From Auanema rhodensis (taxonomy: Eukaryota; Animalia; Nematoda), in assembly GCA_964057225.1 (NCBI GenBank), contig OZ059894.1:7998001-8062000 (forward strand): a stretch of 64,000 nt of DNA. Direction: 5' to 3'. Shown here piece by piece: positions 1 to 14,000 of this stretch. A program made the translations under genes and the position numbers. The notes below the pieces were generated by a model. It worked only from the letters and a program-made list of their open reading frames with translations. It was not told the DNA's origin and did no database searches. The first letter of the stretch is position 1. Each line of letters starts with the position of its first letter.

Positions 1-36
1 GAACGCTTATTATCTTCTATTGATTTGTGGTTTCAG

Positions 37-162
37 TATCACCAATTCCTGCCACACATTCCGTTAGCACCACCTCTATTCCATTCACTCACCCCATATT
101 CAGAATCTCTCAATCCGTCAGAAACTAACCCAGAAAGGAAAAATGATGAGCCTCATCTCTAG
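37..162 (+). CDS. Last coding exon of an unidentified gene entering from the left
   Basis: tttcag acceptor at 31-36; open frame YHQFLPHIPLAPP...KNDEPHL ending TAG 160-162; AATAAA near 283. Confidence 0.55.
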   Translation, partial: YHQFLPHIPLAPPLFHSLTPYSESLNPSETNPERKNDEPHL

Positions 163-291: not shown

Positions 292-3200
292 CTACAAATA
301 GAAGTTTGGAGGGAAATCGACTTCTCCTAAGGCAGCTTGAGAAGGGCTCTTGGTTTTACTGAAAAAAATAACAATGTCACTCTGCAATAACTATTTAGCA
401 CTAACAAAGTAAGTTTGGTATTAATTTTAGATGATATTCTTCGAGCAGCATCTAGAACACTAGGAAGGCGAGTGGTTGCTCCAATAACAGACGAAAAAGT
501 TAAAAAGTTTGTATATGTCTATAACATTGGATGAAAACTACTGGCCCGAGCTCCAACTCAAAACCTGAATAGTGCGCATACTTCTGTGACCGTCATCATA
601 AAAAATAACATAGCTAACTGGCCTACTATCGCTCTGAAAATAAAAATATACGCTTTCAACTTGCTTCCGACAAATCCAACTGAAGCTTGATCTCCATTTT
701 TAGTCACCAAGAGAAATTCAAATATCCGAGAATGAACAACATCTTTGTCAATTACAGTTCCTGGTATAGCATGACTTCTGAAAATTTTTTAATTATAAAA
801 CTACACAAAGCTCAAAAAAGAAAAACAACATACATAAATTTGTTATCATTATCACGAGAAATAAAATTCAATTGGCGTGTTGAACAAACTGTTATATAAG
901 TATAGTTTGTACGTCTCTGAACTGCTTTTCTCATTACAAGTTTACTGAAATTGAATTTTAAACTAAAAATTTTATTTTTTTCTACTCACTTGATCATTTC
1001 TTGATCATTATAATAGGTGTTTTCATGTCTATCACCAAATCGTACGTATCGGTAAATGAAAACTTGTTTAGGAAATTCTCCAACATTCTTTAAGTTCAAT
1101 ACGTTTGTCCGAAACAAATACTGAACTTACTATTTCGAAAGTTTTTAATCCTTCACGGATACCATGTACAACTTCCATTGAAGGCTTCTTTCCATTATGA
1201 AAGATGCACTTATGGAAAAATCTTTTTGAATTTTTAAATTAAAGTAGAATAAAAACTTACCGTGAAACTCTTTTATCCACATAAGTTACTACGGTTGTGA
1301 TCCAGCCGTTTCGAACACGTTCACTATGTAATCCGACGGCTGTGACTTGAAAGGCATTACTGGAAATAATGGATGTATCCGATAAAAGAAAAAAATAAAA
1401 ACAATTCAGTAAATAGCTCATTTGGCAAACTTGTATAGAAGTTAAGACCTCCCATCTTAGAATTAATTCGTAAAACATATGATTGAATTGCAGCTCTGTG
1501 AATATGAGAAATACTTAGTTAAATTGGATTACAAGAACTTACTCATATTTGTCTTCATCTAATAATTCTAGATAAGATAGAGTAGAACTATCAACAAATT
1601 GGCTGACTATTTTCTTTGAATCTAATAGCAATTTGATTCGACCTATGTTTGCATTATGTATAGGATGCTTTTCTTATATAAAAACTACCATAACAAGGCT
1701 CAAATCGCCTGGAAAATATAAGAACGACAGGAGTGATATCCTCTTTCTTCAGCTTATTCAAAAAAATTTCAAGTTTGTTAAATAGCTGTAATACATTATG
1801 GAGATATCATTTCAGAATAAAATAAGACATACCACATCTATTGGAATAGTTTCATAATCACTTTCTTTTCTATTACTTTCATTGAACCCATGCGTCTGAA
1901 ATAGAATTTAAAATAGAATCTCTTAACAGGACTTTTACCAAATAGTTCTTGCACAAGCCATCAAACACTTCGGCACCATATTGATGAAGTTGCTTTGTAA
2001 GAACTCTTGTAAATCTTCTAAAAAAAAGAAAAAATAAAGAAAAAAAGAAACTAATCAACTCTGGTAAGCGAACATTCATGCATTCCAAAGTCATATCATG
2101 TAAAGCATACACCAATAATAAATTTATAAATACAATTCTAGGTGTTCCCACTGAAATGTGGATTTTATTTATTTATATTTTAAAGTAGCCTTTCCTGCAA
2201 TAGCTTTTAAATATATTTTTTCTCTCATAGCACATAGATCTACATTGGATTCATTCTATTATTACAACTAATTAGTTTTTTTAGTAATTAATATTAAACT
2301 TACCACATCGAATACATTTAAGTCACTCAATCTTCTAGCTGTTGCCATTACGAAAGAATTGGAAGCCTGTAATCACAATATAACAATATATAACAATATA
2401 AGAAAACAAACCAAAATTTTTTTAAAAAAACCGTGATTATTCATTTCAATTGTTTTCATTAACAATGATCTATATTCTGTGCAATGTTCAGCTGAAAACA
2501 AGTTCATCTAAAAGAAAAATAAAACTGAGAATAGCGTAAATTTGCTGTAACATTTTTGGGAAGAGCCATAATGCTTTGTGCTGTTTGAGTAACAAATCCC
2601 ATTTTCGTGTATAAAACCTAGAAAAAAAAACAAATTTATAAAAAGATCTATATAAGAAAGATCACTTCCATAGGAGCAAGTCCTTGTTTACCCATAATTG
2701 ATACTACAACTAATGGGGAAAACATATATTCTATCGTGTATCCCATGTTCTCGTACAATTCATAAACTCTATTTCCACAATCCAACAAATAATCATAGGC
2801 ATTTTCTGAACATAAAAAAATATTCAAGAATGTTAAAATGAGGGAATACCTTCCAACAGTTCAACAAATTGAAAGGTGTCAGAGGTTAGATAGTAATCTT
2901 CCAAAAGATCTTTTCTCTTATCATACATAAGTACACCTTTTTCATTGGAACGGCTTTCAACTTTCAAATTTTGTAGAACAGTGTTCAATATATGTAAAAC
3001 ACCATTTGACATTTTTTTATTGTGTTTCCAATTATAATAAGATTCCGAAACTCCCATCTGCAATCAATAAAACTAATTTAAACTGACAATACCTTACATT
3101 TTTAAGAATGCTCCAAGCATAATCTATCAATCGCATATTTTCACTATGAAATACTCCGTGTGTCACTGAAACAGCTTGAAAAGAAAAGAAAAAAAACTTC

Positions 3201-4056
3201 AACTTACTGGAAATACTGGCTACATCTATTCCTTTCTCAATAGCTTGAAGATGACTGACTCCTATTCCAGGAATGTATAATACTCCAGTTGGATGAACTG
3301 TCTTCAAGATGATAAATATTATGCGAAAACAATAGAAAACTGAACTCTAGCTATCTTGACGATCGGATGATCCATATTCGAGTTGGGATATATAACTTTG
3401 TTGTCAACGAACAGAGCATTCCGTTTTCTAAACTTTCTGTTCATAATCCAGACTTTATAAAAGCAAACCTGTCAGTTGTTCCTTGAGACCCATTCAAGAA
3501 GAAGCATGCTATAGCAGAAAGACAAGAACTATTTTCTACAGAGAAATAATAAGAAGAAGTATTCGAATCTCTTTGAATTCGAATATGTATTTTCATCTGA
3601 TATATTTTCGTAAATATATATTTACATAGCGATGTTTTACATTGTTATACTCCAATGTGTGACTGAATATGTTTAACTTCTCTCCAAAAGTCCAAGCTCT
3701 TGAGCATCCATCGAATGTAATCGAAGTTTCATCGATATTGCATGCAGTAACAGTGCTCCAAAATGAGTAAAATTTGTCGTCAGATCTGAAATTACTAACT
3801 CGGTAATAATCGAAGTAAATAAGTTATTAATATCTTCATACCCTAATTCTACTTTTCTACCTTCATTATTATTTCCTTCACATGTTATCGCTTGAAAACT
3901 AACAACATATTCGAACAACTGTAATATTTAAAAATATATTTCAATTACGTATTATGAATTAACTTTAAGTCCATATAAATCATCACGCAACGGCAGATAG
4001 TTTGTTGTGATGTTCATTAAAGGACCCCTTCCATTTGGTTCGATTTTTCTTAACAT
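292..4056 (-). CDS. Highly divergent Argonaute (N-L1-PAZ-L2-MID-PIWI), about 22 exons, RDE-1/ERGO-1-like, slicer residues absent
   Basis: Spliced translation gives collinear Argonaute motifs: N domain ITTNYLPL..LFEYVVSF, ITFDGCSRAWT; L1 VSVTHGVFHSENMRLIDY; PAZ YELYENMGYTIEYMFSPLVVVSIMGKQGLAPMEV; MID VVLIFSRRFEPCYGRIK, IVSQFV, LRINSKMGGLN; PIWI FPKQVFIYRYV, IPGTVIDKDVVHSRIFEFLL, SRPVSYVIFYDD, IQTYTNFLTF, RLPSVLDAARR; C-terminus PPNFYL*. One junction near 2150-2235 is unresolved. Confidence 0.88.
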
Positions 4057-4823: not shown

Positions 4824-7800
4824 CTAGTATCCGGCTGGCACTTGTTGGGTTTTTCTTCTGTAATCTCCGCAAGCTGAGATTCCATTGGCATCAATAGTAA
4901 TGCCTTGAACGATTCCTTCAAATCCAGTTGTGTTGCGGAATTTCTGTCCGTACTTCCATTCCAAAACTGATTTCAACTCCTAATTAATTATAATTTAGAT
5001 TGGGGGTTTTCTTCAATCTCATACCTTGGGGAAAGAATCGTCAACCTGAGTAATATCTGGGGTAAATTGATTATGGAACATTGGAGAATCAATAGCGTCT
5101 TTGATGGATTGTCCGAATATCAGTGGACGGATAACGGCTTTAGCTACGGCTGAGATGATTTTTGATCCACCAGACCCTCCAATAACCATGCGAGGCTAGA
5201 ACAGAAAATTTTTTCTTCATTTACTGATGTGTGAAAACTGACCTCTTTGGTTTTCTTGTTGAAAATGACCATTGGACTCATACTACTCATTGGTCTTTTG
5301 CCTGGAGCAATGAAGTTGGTTTTAGAAGGAGCAAAACCAAATCTAAAAAACACCAGTTTATTATTAGATTAGAGCTAATAGACAAGCAAACCCGTTAGTC
5401 ATTCCAGGGGTAGAGAAGTCATCCATTTCGTCGTTCCAAATAATTCCATAAGCATCGGATTCAACAGCAGCTCCAAACCTGTAATTCAAATCTGTTAATC
5501 TGTCCATATTGGTATTTGATACCATCTATTGATAGTGGTGGTTGATGATACTCCGTTGCCATGCTCATCGAGTACAGTAACTTGAGAGGTTCCATGATCT
5601 GGGACCTGTATGAAATTTTAATAATATTTCAGAGGAAAACGTTTTTATACATGAGCTTGATCTATTCCTCCGTAAGCTTCAGTAGCTTGTGCTTTGTTGG
5701 TAACGCGTGAAACGACCCAATCAATGTAGGCTTCGCTAGTAAGGTTCTTGGAAAGCTCTAATGCACCTTTGACGTAGTCGTGGTCTCCGAGAAGTGTTCT
5801 AGAGAAAAGTCCAAACTAAGGATTGAAAATATTATATCTGTGTACCTTTGAGCGTAAGCAAATTTCATGGCTTCAGCAAAATGATGAGTGGCAATAGGAT
5901 CAGATTGGATATCTACATTGTGTCCTTCGGGGTAGAGTTCTAAATAATTTTTATATGTTTCTCTTCTCGTCTTCTGGGTTATGCTATGAACTCACTGCTC
6001 ATGATGGAGATAGCAAGTTGGGTTACAGCGAAAGAAGATGGAGGTGGTCCTCCGCACATAACTAAGTCTCCACGGAAGTGGTCAGTGATGAGAGCTGTTT
6101 CATAAACTCTAACCTTGTAGGATGCAAAATCGTCTTTGGTGATAATTCCACCTGAATATCAAATTTACTTTAAGTATAATAGAAGAAATTAACCTCCTTG
6201 TTTGAATTCCTTAGCCATAACGTCAGCCATCTCTCCATGGTAGAACAGCTCTACTGGGTCAGAACTTTTGGCAATTCTTTCCAAAGTATTAGCCAGCTTC
6301 ATGCGTGGAAGAAGATCACCAGTCTTGTATGTATCATTAGTCTTGGGATTGATCCAATCTCTGAAATAAGCGACAAATTTTTCAGATATTTGAATTATCA
6401 AGTTTACTTCATGCTTGGGAACAAACGGAAGTGACGCTCTTTAACTTTCATAACGTCATCTAAGTATTGAGAAACTGGTACTCCTTCTCTACACAAGCGA
6501 ATTGATGGCTCTACTAGTTCTTTCCACTTAATATTTCCTACAAAAATGATAATTACCATAACTCCATAAATATGAAAGAACCTGAGCCAAATCGTTTGTA
6601 GACATACCAATAACCAGCAAGCTCACCAGGTACAGCTGCTGCTTTGAACCCTGAACAGAGATGCTGATTCACTTATATATTTTAACATCTATTTTACCGT
6701 ATTTAGACCCATCACTATCACCTATAAACATTTCTTCAAAAGAAGCAGCTGGAGCACTTTCACGAGCATCAATAGCAATGCACCTTCCTTCGGTCCTGAA
6801 CGGAAAAATGGTTGGTAAAAATTAATATTTTTCATTCCAAAAGAAATTTCGTAAAAAACAAATCGTACTCACTTGTTATAAAGAGTCATGAGAAAACCTC
6901 CTCCGAGTCCACTTGATTGAGGATTTACTATTCCTAAGCAAAACATAACAGCGATAGAAGATTCGACAGCATTTCCTCCTTTCTTTAGAATATCGCTAAA
7001 ATATAATAAGTATTGTAGAATTACTGCCATCAATCTGTTACCCTCCGATTTTGGAACAAATTCCATTATCTGTTGTTACAGCAGCTTTTTGGAAGTGACC
7101 TTCTACGCTCTTTGATGGTGCTGGCCATGCAAACGGTGCCGATGAGGAAACCGGCTAAATTTCAATGATTGAACAAAACCCTTCTCATTGTATTTAGATT
7201 GTCATTAAGAGCATCAGAAACATTTTGAGCAAATTCAGATTTAAGTTTAAGCAAACATACCGATGCTATTGCAGAATTTTGGCTGAACGCCAATAAAAGA
7301 GTGACCAAAGCTATCATGACCAGAAGAGCCAGCACGATAGTGAATAGAAACCTAGAAATAAATAATTAATAAACAATAAGAGTCTTCAAAATTAGACAAG
7401 CACTGCTCCTCAAATTGAGAAGTCTCTGAGAAGATGGAAAAAAATAAATTCAGAATAAATGGACAGATCTCTCGAACTCTGTATATGGTATGACAGAAAT
7501 TCTCACAAATCTCTGCTGGCCAAGAAGAGCATTTCGTCCATTTTGATGCCCCTGAAGGTGACAAAGTGAGACATGAAGTGGGTTGGACCAAGGCAAGATT
7601 TTTTGCCTGCGGCCATTTTCAGAAGAGCAAAGTGGCTCACCCTTTCACACCCAGTGTGCAAATAAAGAGTATTGGGTGGACTTTACGGACACATTTTCTT
7701 AGGAGAAAACGATTCCAAAGGAAAGAAAGATGAAGGGGAGAAAATAAGAAAAGAAGAGGAATGTGGAGCTTTTCTAGACGGAGATAGAGAGAGAGAGTGA

Positions 7801-11056: not shown

Positions 11057-14000
11057 TTAAAGCTTTCGTTGAGTTAGTCGCAATGAAAATCCAAGTGATG
11101 GCTTTAAAATAATCTCTGATACAGCAATATTTCCTGGAGCTGGTACTTCTGTTTCAACATGAAAATTTCTAAATACGTATGAAAGAACTATTTTTTCTTC
11201 CAAAATAGCAAATTTTTGACCTGAAAAGAAAGAATGATGATACAAGAAGATGAAGGTTATTCTCGAGTTATTCATTGAACTGAAAATCTTCATGAACTGA
11301 CCAATGCAGTTTCTTGGACCAGCAGAAAATGGAATATATGAGTAAGGATCTCGCTTGACCGTTTTTTCTGTATCAAAGTGCTCGGGATAAAATTCATCCG
11401 GAAATTCATATTCTCTTGGATCCCTTTGACAAGCCATGGGTGCTACTACTATTGTCATTCCTTTGGGCAATTTGCAGTATTCTGCAAAAACAATTAGTAT
11501 TTTCTAATTTCATAACAAAATTCTTTAAATAATACTTTTTATGCATTTGTATTTTCTTTGTGTGAACTTAGCGATATGACCATTAATTTTCGTTGTATTG
11601 TTGTTTTTTCGAATTAAATAACGAATGCAACCGGTTAATATGATAACAATTGGAGAAATGAAATACTGAGAGTGTCACGTGATGACGTGGAAATTGCATA
11701 TTTTAGATTTCATATGGATAAACTTACTCATATCTACGTCTTGGTCAAGTCGACGTGCTATTAATGGCACTGATGGCATCAACCTTAATGACTCTTTAAG
11801 ACATTTCTCCAAGTAAACCATTTTCTTAACATCTTCCGATGTAGGCATGCGATCCGAATTTCCTGGAATAACGGCGGTTTTACGTTTTTTGATTTTTGGT
11901 CCAGGAAATGCTTCTAAGCTAGATACACGAACCAAAAATTGCGTCCATTTCCTCATGAACCAACTGCTGACACCGTGGTGTTTGCCCTAGCCACCACATA
12001 GTGAAGCCTATACTGCTAGCAGTTGTGTCATGTCCTGAAACAAAATATTTGAAGTTCTTGAAGTATGCTTTAAAACAAAATAGTAACCTTCAAACATAAA
12101 TGTGTCAACTTCTTCTCGTATATCCTCATCTGTCAGCTTATTTTCCATTTGGTTGTGTAATAGTAAATCCAAGAAAGGTCGACCATACTTCTATAATATT
12201 TTTTTTTCATATTTAATATTTTAGAGTAATGATCGTATACGTGACAATATTATGAAAATACCTGATTTTCTTCTGAATTGTATTCGTATTCCATTTCCTT
12301 TTTCCGTTGGGAAATGACCTTAAACTTTGAATTTTTTGAAGAAAAAAAGCCTTTTGATGGATTACGGAACGTACATTTCTTGTAAAGTCAGTTGTTAACT
12401 TAACTAATTCATCAAATTCATATCCTAAACCAGTCAGATACCATATAGGTTTAAACCACAACCAAGGTAATCTTAATTTCAATAAATTATTAAGAAACTT
12501 TTCTTTGTTTGAAACACTGTTTAGGTGCATTTCATACGAATAACATGAAGTCATTGTATCATCTGAGAGATTCAGAAAAGATACGAGAAGCGAACGTGTC
12601 CTATCAAGAAAAGAGTTTGAACTTTCATCAATCAGTATATGTAATCGCTTATGGTCATTCAGAACCCGTTTTTCAATAGTATTAAAGTGTGATATGTGTT
12701 CTATTTTTAGATAAAATGACAACAATTTAACCGGAAATATTAATTACATGCTGACTATATATACATAGTCTGGCTTCTCAAAATGATAATAACTCTTGAT
12801 CTCTCTTTCTCTCCAAATAATTAGAAATTTGACTCACAGCTACCGTTTCAACTTTTCCATTATTCGTTTATATCACATTTGAAGTTTTTTTTCTTGTTTT
12901 CCTACTGTGTATGATACAACACAATATATTGTAAACTTCTAAAAATCGTATCTAATTCTCTAATATCAACTCTTCTTACTTTAATCTTATCAAATGATAA
13001 ATAAGTTAGAGTAATATATATCGAAGATGTTATTAGATATAAGGTTTTACGTTTCATGACAAAATTATATCAAAACTTTTCCTTTAATGCTCAAAAATGT
13101 TGGCAAATTATTCATTTTCTCTTGGCTATCACGAGACTCAAAAAGGAATATAAAATGATTCTTTCGTGCACACAATTTCATTTAGGCCACCAACTTATGA
13201 TGAAACTTTCAACTATAACGATACTTTTTTAGTTCAGTTTGTTTACATTAAATATTGAAGAACATCTAAGAGATTACAAGGAACTGTTGGCTTCGATCAA
13301 CCTACGTACATAACTATATTCTATTTTGATCAAGGGCGTCATACCTGATTTCGAGAATTCAACATTCCATGTTTCTTAATGGAAATTGCTTAGTAATAAT
13401 CGACTTTCTTTTATTCCCGTAAAAAGCTTCTTTCATTTAAATCCAAATTTCTTATTCAATTATCAAGGAAGTCGCCAATAATTGACCAAGTCAAGTTCTT
13501 CATGAGGTCTTCCACAATAAAGAACTTCAAGTACAAACGTCGCTCTTTAAAACCTTGAATTACGATCTTACAGAATCATCAAAAGCGTTTTTCTTTATGA
13601 TCATTGTTTAAGATGCACCTATTCCACCGTTATACCGGGCTCTTCCTTTCTCGTTCTCGCCATATGTCTCTCATTCTCTCATTTGTTCTCTCTCCATCTC
13701 TTTTCCCTCTACTGCCACTAAACAAAAACAACTCCGCCTCCTTTTTCTGAACAAATGTGCGGAATCGGCATACTTAAACTCGGTAGAAAATGTTGGGCGA
13801 CACATCAATCCGAATCACGACTGTGGGTTTTCCCCCTCTTACCTTTCAATCTCTTTTCTTCCATCCCAATTCCTTCATTTCCCCGCAAGGTTGGCAGGAT
13901 AATTCAAATTCATTTTTCACTTCCTCATCTAAATTTCCTCAAGCTATCCCTATCTTGCTTGTAAAGTTCTCTTATTTGAGATATTTTTGTGACAAATATT

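Follow-up and report, generated by a model that had tools for sequence, protein, structure and literature searches.

How far an Argonaute gene can drift before it ceases to be recognised, and whether its parentage can still be read afterwards, are the questions raised by positions 292 to 4056 of a 64,000 nucleotide (nt) stretch of the nematode Auanema rhodensis genome (C1:7,998,001-8,062,000 in a 181-Mb assembly, GenBank GCA_964057225.1, contig OZ059894.1). This whole stretch is referred to here as the window. A sequence-only reading had proposed that it holds an intact Argonaute gene of about 22 exons, lacking slicer residues, resembling RDE-1 and invisible to open reading frame (ORF) scans. 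The follow-up analysis finds a multi-exon, minus-strand gene of the Argonaute family, hereafter the window gene. Its sequence and structure suggest that it is, on balance, likely to be a lineage-specific, very fast-evolving Argonaute gene, copied from an Asp-retaining Argonaute now situated at C1:9.82 Mb (locus L005).

Argonaute homology of the MID and PIWI exons

Searches with the spliced model used its exons singly; the MID and PIWI segments were placed by alignment and the N and L1 segments by position. The comparison set was the nine Argonaute loci of the same genome (L001-L009). Among these, L003 is of the canonical ALG-1/2 type, L001, L006 and L009 are WAGO-like, the catalytic residues having been lost in L001 and L009, and L004 looks PIWI/PRG-like. 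Four MID and PIWI exons (18, 19, 24 and 25) match Argonaute loci in order. By tblastn, L005 is matched by exon 18 at E=0.010, by exon 19 at E=3.7e-4 and by exon 25 at E=0.006 (z=7.0), the first two with z scores of 4.9 and 8.1 and identities of 15/32 and 12/30; exon 19 also matches L001 at 0.002. Exon 24 matches five Argonaute loci at E values of 0.002-0.036, with L009 at 0.002 and L006, L008 and L001 at 0.005-0.01. Apart from two stray ones, the matches lie on the gene strand and in the homologous place, and Pfam recognises the pieces matched in L005, L008 and L009 as Piwi. At 23 bits or more, nine exon matches fall on Argonaute loci, against none for reversed decoys.

An unconstrained exon-chain score failed to part real sequence from decoy, whereas a distance-constrained version succeeded. 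The collinear chain scores thus obtained were 51.0 for L005, 41.3 for L008, 35.5 for L001 and 29.2 for L006, with L002 and L007 at the level of the null. For 192 shuffled chains the mean was 22.0, the standard deviation 3.2 and the maximum 35.1; the L005 chain stands about nine standard deviations above this null. On these sequence comparisons, the homology of the window gene to Argonautes is considered established for MID and PIWI.

The gene model behind these comparisons was made from a six-frame reading, the strand being read manually and the boundaries set by coordinates; an automatic splice dynamic programme over-spliced, and the manual model was used in its place. In its coordinate-checked form the model runs from an ATG at 4056 to a TAG at 294-292 and comprises 27 exons and 26 GT-AG introns, with a spliced length of 2550 nt, or 849 codons. 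The earlier description in terms of short spliced exons therefore stands, while its count has to be raised. The introns measure 39-56 nt, with the single exception of one of 83 nt, and guanine plus cytosine (GC) content is 34% in the exons and 15-30% in most introns. The window as a whole is eukaryotic in character and AT-rich, its GC content being about 30-36% and its introns about 45 nt long. Every apparent stop is read past by the model; those remarked on previously, at 1674 and near 520, do fall inside 46-nt introns (1688-1643 and 564-519).

Permissive splicing sometimes crosses random sequence, and exon-by-exon searches of Pfam, PDB and Atlas are negative, so the locus might be taken for open frames strung together by chance in AT-rich DNA, with no gene present. 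As a control, the minimum number of 38-90-nt GT-AG introns that keeps a frame open across 3765 nt was determined: 20 suffice on the gene strand, the antisense is uncrossable, as are 17/24 random window segments and 6/10 shuffles, and the remaining ones require 22-32. The chance reading is extremely improbable. It is refuted by the collinear, strand-correct matches to several Piwi genes, which greatly exceed the shuffled and reversed controls, together with the agreement of eight exons with L005 in phase and length.

Invisibility to ORF scans, as originally described, extends to profile and database searches. With both stop-to-stop frames and exact exons as queries, Pfam returned one sub-threshold Piwi match (11.2 bits, E=0.21, profile positions 212-242), which sits on the frame holding exon 24, the exact exons giving none; this result lies below the cut-off because the queries were exons of 30 residues rather than a whole protein. 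A genome-wide PF02171 scan listed eight other loci and missed the window gene. Exons 9, 19 and 20 found no match among PDB sequences, nor did exon 8 find a usable one in the ESM Atlas. A search of 1.84e9 representative proteins with exon 8, the longest at 69 residues, likewise recovered no true relative; its only match, P0001, is a 331-residue tandem-repeat protein aligned in five stretches and was rejected as a compositional artefact. Because exon 8 has no match in the protein collection searched, the window gene needs annotating. When its own genome was queried with the DNA of the entire locus and with exons 18, 19 and 24, the locus itself was recovered and no close paralogue, and a tblastn comparison of every exon with the remainder of the window found no tandem copy.

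Two further loci were noted in the course of these comparisons. The WAGO-like L009 (C4:10,131,500-10,141,499, minus strand, with its PIWI end near 10,133,017) was also missed by the genome-wide Pfam Piwi scan; its first Asp is kept and its second is replaced by Ser. L008 (C5:11,667,000-11,676,999, plus strand), second to L005 in chain score against the window gene, is very divergent and slicer-dead, with Asn for the first Asp and R-C-G in place of R-D-G, and has no close paralogue.

Locus L005 and the shared intron positions

The nearest detectable relative is not WAGO-like, as the sequence-only reading had anticipated. L005 (C1:9,811,000-9,820,999, plus strand) lies on the same chromosome, 1.8 Mb from the window gene, and keeps both catalytic Asp residues. 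Its MID-PIWI exons were modelled from its sequence and compared exon by exon. Entry phases are equal in exons 18-22 and 25-27 (1, 2, 2, 2, 0, 0, 0 and 2), and the lengths of these eight exons in the window gene and L005 are 100/100, 93/105, 99/129, 91/94, 98/98, 69/69, 113/125 and 67/97 nt. Over the same exons 69/236 aligned residues are identical (29%).

Five introns are shared by the two genes: the first after the PAZ Pro-x-Glu, the second eight codons before the Leu of the I-N-S-K motif, the third five codons before F-P-K, the fourth at the 23rd codon after I-Y-R and the fifth nine codons after D-D. At these five spots the frames of L003, L001, L006 and L009 continue without a break or are split at other points, and L008 lacks at least three of the five introns. 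Other introns are common to the ALG-like L003 too and are therefore old: one follows the pocket Tyr, one precedes the first-Asp strand, one follows the first-Asp exon and one precedes S-R-P. The one directly after the pocket Tyr is a phase-1 intron in L003 and L005 alike. The intron before exon 24 is private to the window gene.

If the window gene were a member of the WAGO clade, slicer loss would be expected, and its resemblance to L005 would have to come from uneven evolutionary rates. Its slicer residues are indeed lost as in WAGOs, exon 24 matches WAGO-like loci equally well as, or better than, L005, the slicer-dead L008 and L001 are second and third in chain score, and in PAZ the sole significant match is with L001, a WAGO-like locus; but the chain score is highest for L005 and lower for L001, L006 and L009, in phases, lengths and the five intron positions the window gene goes with L005 and with none of those three loci, and MID motifs are common only to L005. 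A WAGO origin is accordingly regarded as very doubtful.

An old duplication of a gene of the L005 type, followed by very fast evolution, appears to be the simplest reading of this structure. The window gene keeps the exon-intron skeleton of L005 and, the junction at 2303-2151 apart, a complete length from N to PIWI. L005, the closest paralogue of the window gene by chain score and gene structure, is a putative RDE-1-type gene. It has no close paralogue in its own genome, and a word search with a 141-residue frame of L005, aimed at labelling it, gave no match in the length range searched. A further observation on L005 itself is that at the canonical position of the catalytic His (L005:8878-9002, C1 ~9,819,900) it has Asn, with a His three residues upstream, so that its own slicer status may deserve attention.

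The N-terminal half is less legible. The claim of a full Argonaute domain series can be upheld by alignment for MID and PIWI and by one motif for PAZ, the order N-L1-PAZ-L2-MID-PIWI depending for N and L1 on position only. The PAZ motif is the end of exon 9, which resembles the PAZ piece of L001 (z=5.8, equalled in 0/300 shuffles; tblastn E=0.19), and this is the sole significant similarity in that half. Exons 1-8 and 10-17 have no measurable similarity to L005, an oddity of exon 2 aside, whose best match in L005 falls outside the part read as gene and is scored as highly in 1/60 shuffles. The proposed likeness to RDE-1 in the N, L1 and PAZ segments consequently finds no support, those exons being without measurable similarity to L005 and the PAZ match being to a WAGO-like locus. 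Nor was any particular affinity to ERGO-1 observed, in a comparison set that includes no locus labelled as ERGO-1.

Catalytic site, guide pocket and the junction at 2303-2151

The active-site and pocket positions were read against the ALG-like L003 and L005, and the motifs quoted in the sequence-only reading were all found. The loss of slicer residues that it described is borne out. The first catalytic Asp corresponds to Val or falls in a gap, the strand in exon 20 (1359-1261) being without Asp; the second is Tyr, the RDG motif reading R-Y-V in exon 22; and the catalytic His is Arg, with no His in its region of exon 26. The ungapped position of the Glu finger is Pro, with a candidate Glu three residues later. 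The Asp-Glu-Asp-His/Asp tetrad by which slicer-competent Argonautes are recognised is therefore not complete, and on these residues the window gene is not a slicing primary Argonaute.

The pocket for the guide 5'-phosphate in MID is kept, also as described earlier: exon 17 closes on its Tyr, exon 18 supplies a Lys and the Gln, and exon 19 supplies the second Lys of K-x-N-x-K, all of them aligning with L003 and L005. In that motif the window gene has Arg for the first Lys; at the position of Arg-812 (human Ago2 numbering) it has Lys, and its aromatic C-terminus is encoded in exon 27. Identity to L005 is 40-48% in the MID exons and about 15% in the catalytic exons. This is the pattern that would be expected if guide anchoring had remained under selection after catalysis was released.

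A duplicate of L005 that had lost three of the four slicer residues and kept those that bind the 5'-phosphate in MID would, if expressed, load 5'-monophosphate small RNAs and act without cleaving the target, whether by recruiting partners or by sequestering guides. The more specific proposal, that the product is an expressed, guide-binding, non-cleaving offshoot of the primary (RDE-1-type) lineage, loading its own 5'-monophosphate small RNAs or titrating those of its parent, and so represents an undescribed small-RNA branch found in this nematode lineage only, is judged unlikely.

The earlier description of the gene as intact is unproven owing to the junction at 2303-2151, a problem already flagged at 2150-2235. 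Between a strong donor at 2303 and a strong acceptor at 2151 lie 153 nt in which all three frames have stops, at about 2175-2200. The difficulty is thus real, although a 22-nt micro-exon still closes the frame; with its weak donor and the 83-nt intron that follows, it is the sole canonical solution. A single 153-nt intron was rejected for its wrong phase and immediate stop, GC-AG or other donors because none is in the right phase, other acceptors because none is present, and a one-base assembly error because of the stops in all three frames. An intron of the modal size, 44 nt, would begin with GA and not GT. The micro-exon solution omits a stretch that resembles, by eye, the W-D-M-R-x-K-x-F segment of canonical Argonautes, and the L005 equivalent is one uninterrupted exon. 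What lies here may be a micro-exon, a splice outside the canonical rules, an error of assembly or a change that inactivated the gene.

As one junction depends on a micro-exon with a weak donor, the locus may be a young pseudogene: a diverged Argonaute duplicate, coding until recently, that was inactivated at 2303-2151 by loss of a donor or by an insertion and now yields no full-length protein. The stops in all three frames, the GA start of a modal-size intron, the absence of any intron at this place in L005 and the lack of a match for exon 8 in the protein collection are in keeping with this, and pseudogene alleles are common in Argonaute subfamilies with fast turnover (PMC12152482). By contrast, every one of the remaining 25 junctions is canonical, the 26 exons besides the micro-exon stay open despite AT-rich, stop-prone DNA, a canonical solution by way of the micro-exon exists and the pocket residues are still kept. 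Recent inactivation is for these reasons seen as a serious possibility, if a somewhat improbable one.

Several points weigh against descent of a working gene from the L005 type. Across the N-terminal half, similarity to the Argonaute loci is almost too low to measure, and Pfam gives none for exons 1-7. The frame breaks unless the micro-exon is used; use of the micro-exon, and hence production of a protein, is predicted only. In the 1.84e9 proteins searched with exon 8 there was no annotated product, transcript-derived protein or recognisable orthologue. The sharing of introns was read by eye from open frames, with L002, L004 and L007 outside the comparison, and the RDE-1 identity of L005 is unverified, this locus being put forward as closest paralogue by structure.

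Gene layout, surroundings and comparison with known systems

The features of the window gene and its surroundings are collected in the table below. Exons 2-7 are open frames linked by GT-AG introns of 40-56 nt. The surroundings are an ordinary gene-dense context.

Features of the window gene and of its surroundings, in window coordinates
Feature	Position	Strand	Basis or remark
Whole gene	292..4056	-	GT-AG model with phases, six-frame reading
Exon 1, start codon and presumed start of N domain	3964..4056	-	N-start likeness by eye; no statistical match
Exons 2-7, presumed N and L1	3098..3918 (3918-3842, 3785-3641, 3596-3469, 3427-3346, 3301-3208, 3165-3098)	-	Position alone
Exons 8-9, presumed PAZ	2666..3057 (3057-2850, 2805-2666)	-	Exon 9 end compared with L001; intron common with L005
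Exons 10-12, L2 linker	2304..2617 (2617-2552, 2507-2412, 2366-2304)	-	By eye against L005 exons 6753-7085; not statistically significant
Problem junction	2151..2303	-	48-nt intron, 22-nt micro-exon 13 (2255-2234), 83-nt intron with weak donor
Exons 14-17, first half of MID, pocket Tyr at end	1689..2150 (2150-2060, 2017-1939, 1895-1833, 1785-1689)	-	Tyr alignment, shared intron
Exons 18-19, MID pocket Lys and Gln, then Lys of I-N-x-K-x-G-G	1403..1642 (1642-1543, 1495-1403)	-	L005 matches
Exons 20-22, first half of PIWI: first Asp strand, Glu-finger loop, second Asp strand	990..1359 (1359-1261, 1221-1131, 1087-990)	-	L005 phases
Exons 23-25, second half of PIWI	565..944 (944-834, 777-681, 633-565)	-	tblastn against Argonaute loci; weak Pfam Piwi
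Exons 26-27, His region and aromatic C-terminus	292..518 (518-406, 358-292)	-	Model, phase comparison, residue alignment
Candidate poly(A) signal AATAAA	249..254	-	About 40 nt past the stop codon, read from sequence
Apparent last exon of a convergent gene	1-162	+	By eye; ~130 nt from the Argonaute stop
Gamma-glutamyltranspeptidase-like exons	6189-6401	-	Pfam E=1e-9; upstream of the Argonaute, at about 6.2 kb of the window
Cytochrome P450 gene exons	11057-11956	-	Pfam E=6e-23; upstream of the Argonaute, at about 11-12 kb of the window

The locus illustrates the limit of drift, being unseen by exon-level profiles and yet retaining the intron skeleton and guide pocket of its apparent parent, and it suggests that shared intron positions can assign parentage where sequence similarity fails. 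If expressed, the window gene would be a natural case of a slicing-type lineage turned non-slicing binder; if not, it would be a snapshot of the death of an Argonaute gene.

Of the systems with which the window gene can be compared, L005 is the nearest. The two share a chromosome, the phases and lengths of eight MID-PIWI exons, five introns and a PAZ exon ending in Pro-x-Glu. They differ in that L005 keeps both catalytic Asp residues and is recognised as Pfam Piwi, while in the window gene the N half shows no detectable likeness, exon 24 is preceded by an additional intron, and one junction is disrupted at a place that L005 spans with a single exon. RDE-1 of C. elegans, a primary Argonaute of the exogenous siRNA pathway outside the WAGOs, binds 5'-monophosphate guides and retains its catalytic residues, which are used for removal of the passenger strand. 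In the window gene these residues are lost, and any likeness to RDE-1 rests on the unverified label of L005. WAGOs, as represented by L001 and L009, resemble the window gene in their lost slicer residues, a similar PAZ end and a P-G-T motif, and differ from it in intron positions and MID motifs; they bind 5'-triphosphate 22G RNAs (PMC8837657). The catalytic tetrad is kept in few Argonautes (PMC10101689).

Nematode Argonaute families turn over fast, and divergent copies confined to one lineage are candidate carriers of new small-RNA functions; gene birth and death in the family are documented across Caenorhabditis, where RDE-1 is near single copy, with a mean of 1.14 per species (PMC12152482). 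A documented parallel is found in C. panamensis, whose seven ALG-like Argonautes are highly divergent and uncertain in function (PMC12152482). Like the window gene, these are lineage-specific, not derived from WAGOs and of very low identity to their parent family, and because of that low identity the function of both is in question. The C. panamensis genes are tandem duplicates with verified coding sequence, some of them without PAZ, whereas the window gene is a single copy without close paralogue, has predicted splicing and includes a PAZ-like exon. Lineage-specific divergent Argonautes are thus already documented, and what seems unusual in the window gene is its apparent origin from a catalytic, non-WAGO Argonaute, combined with extreme divergence on a preserved skeleton.

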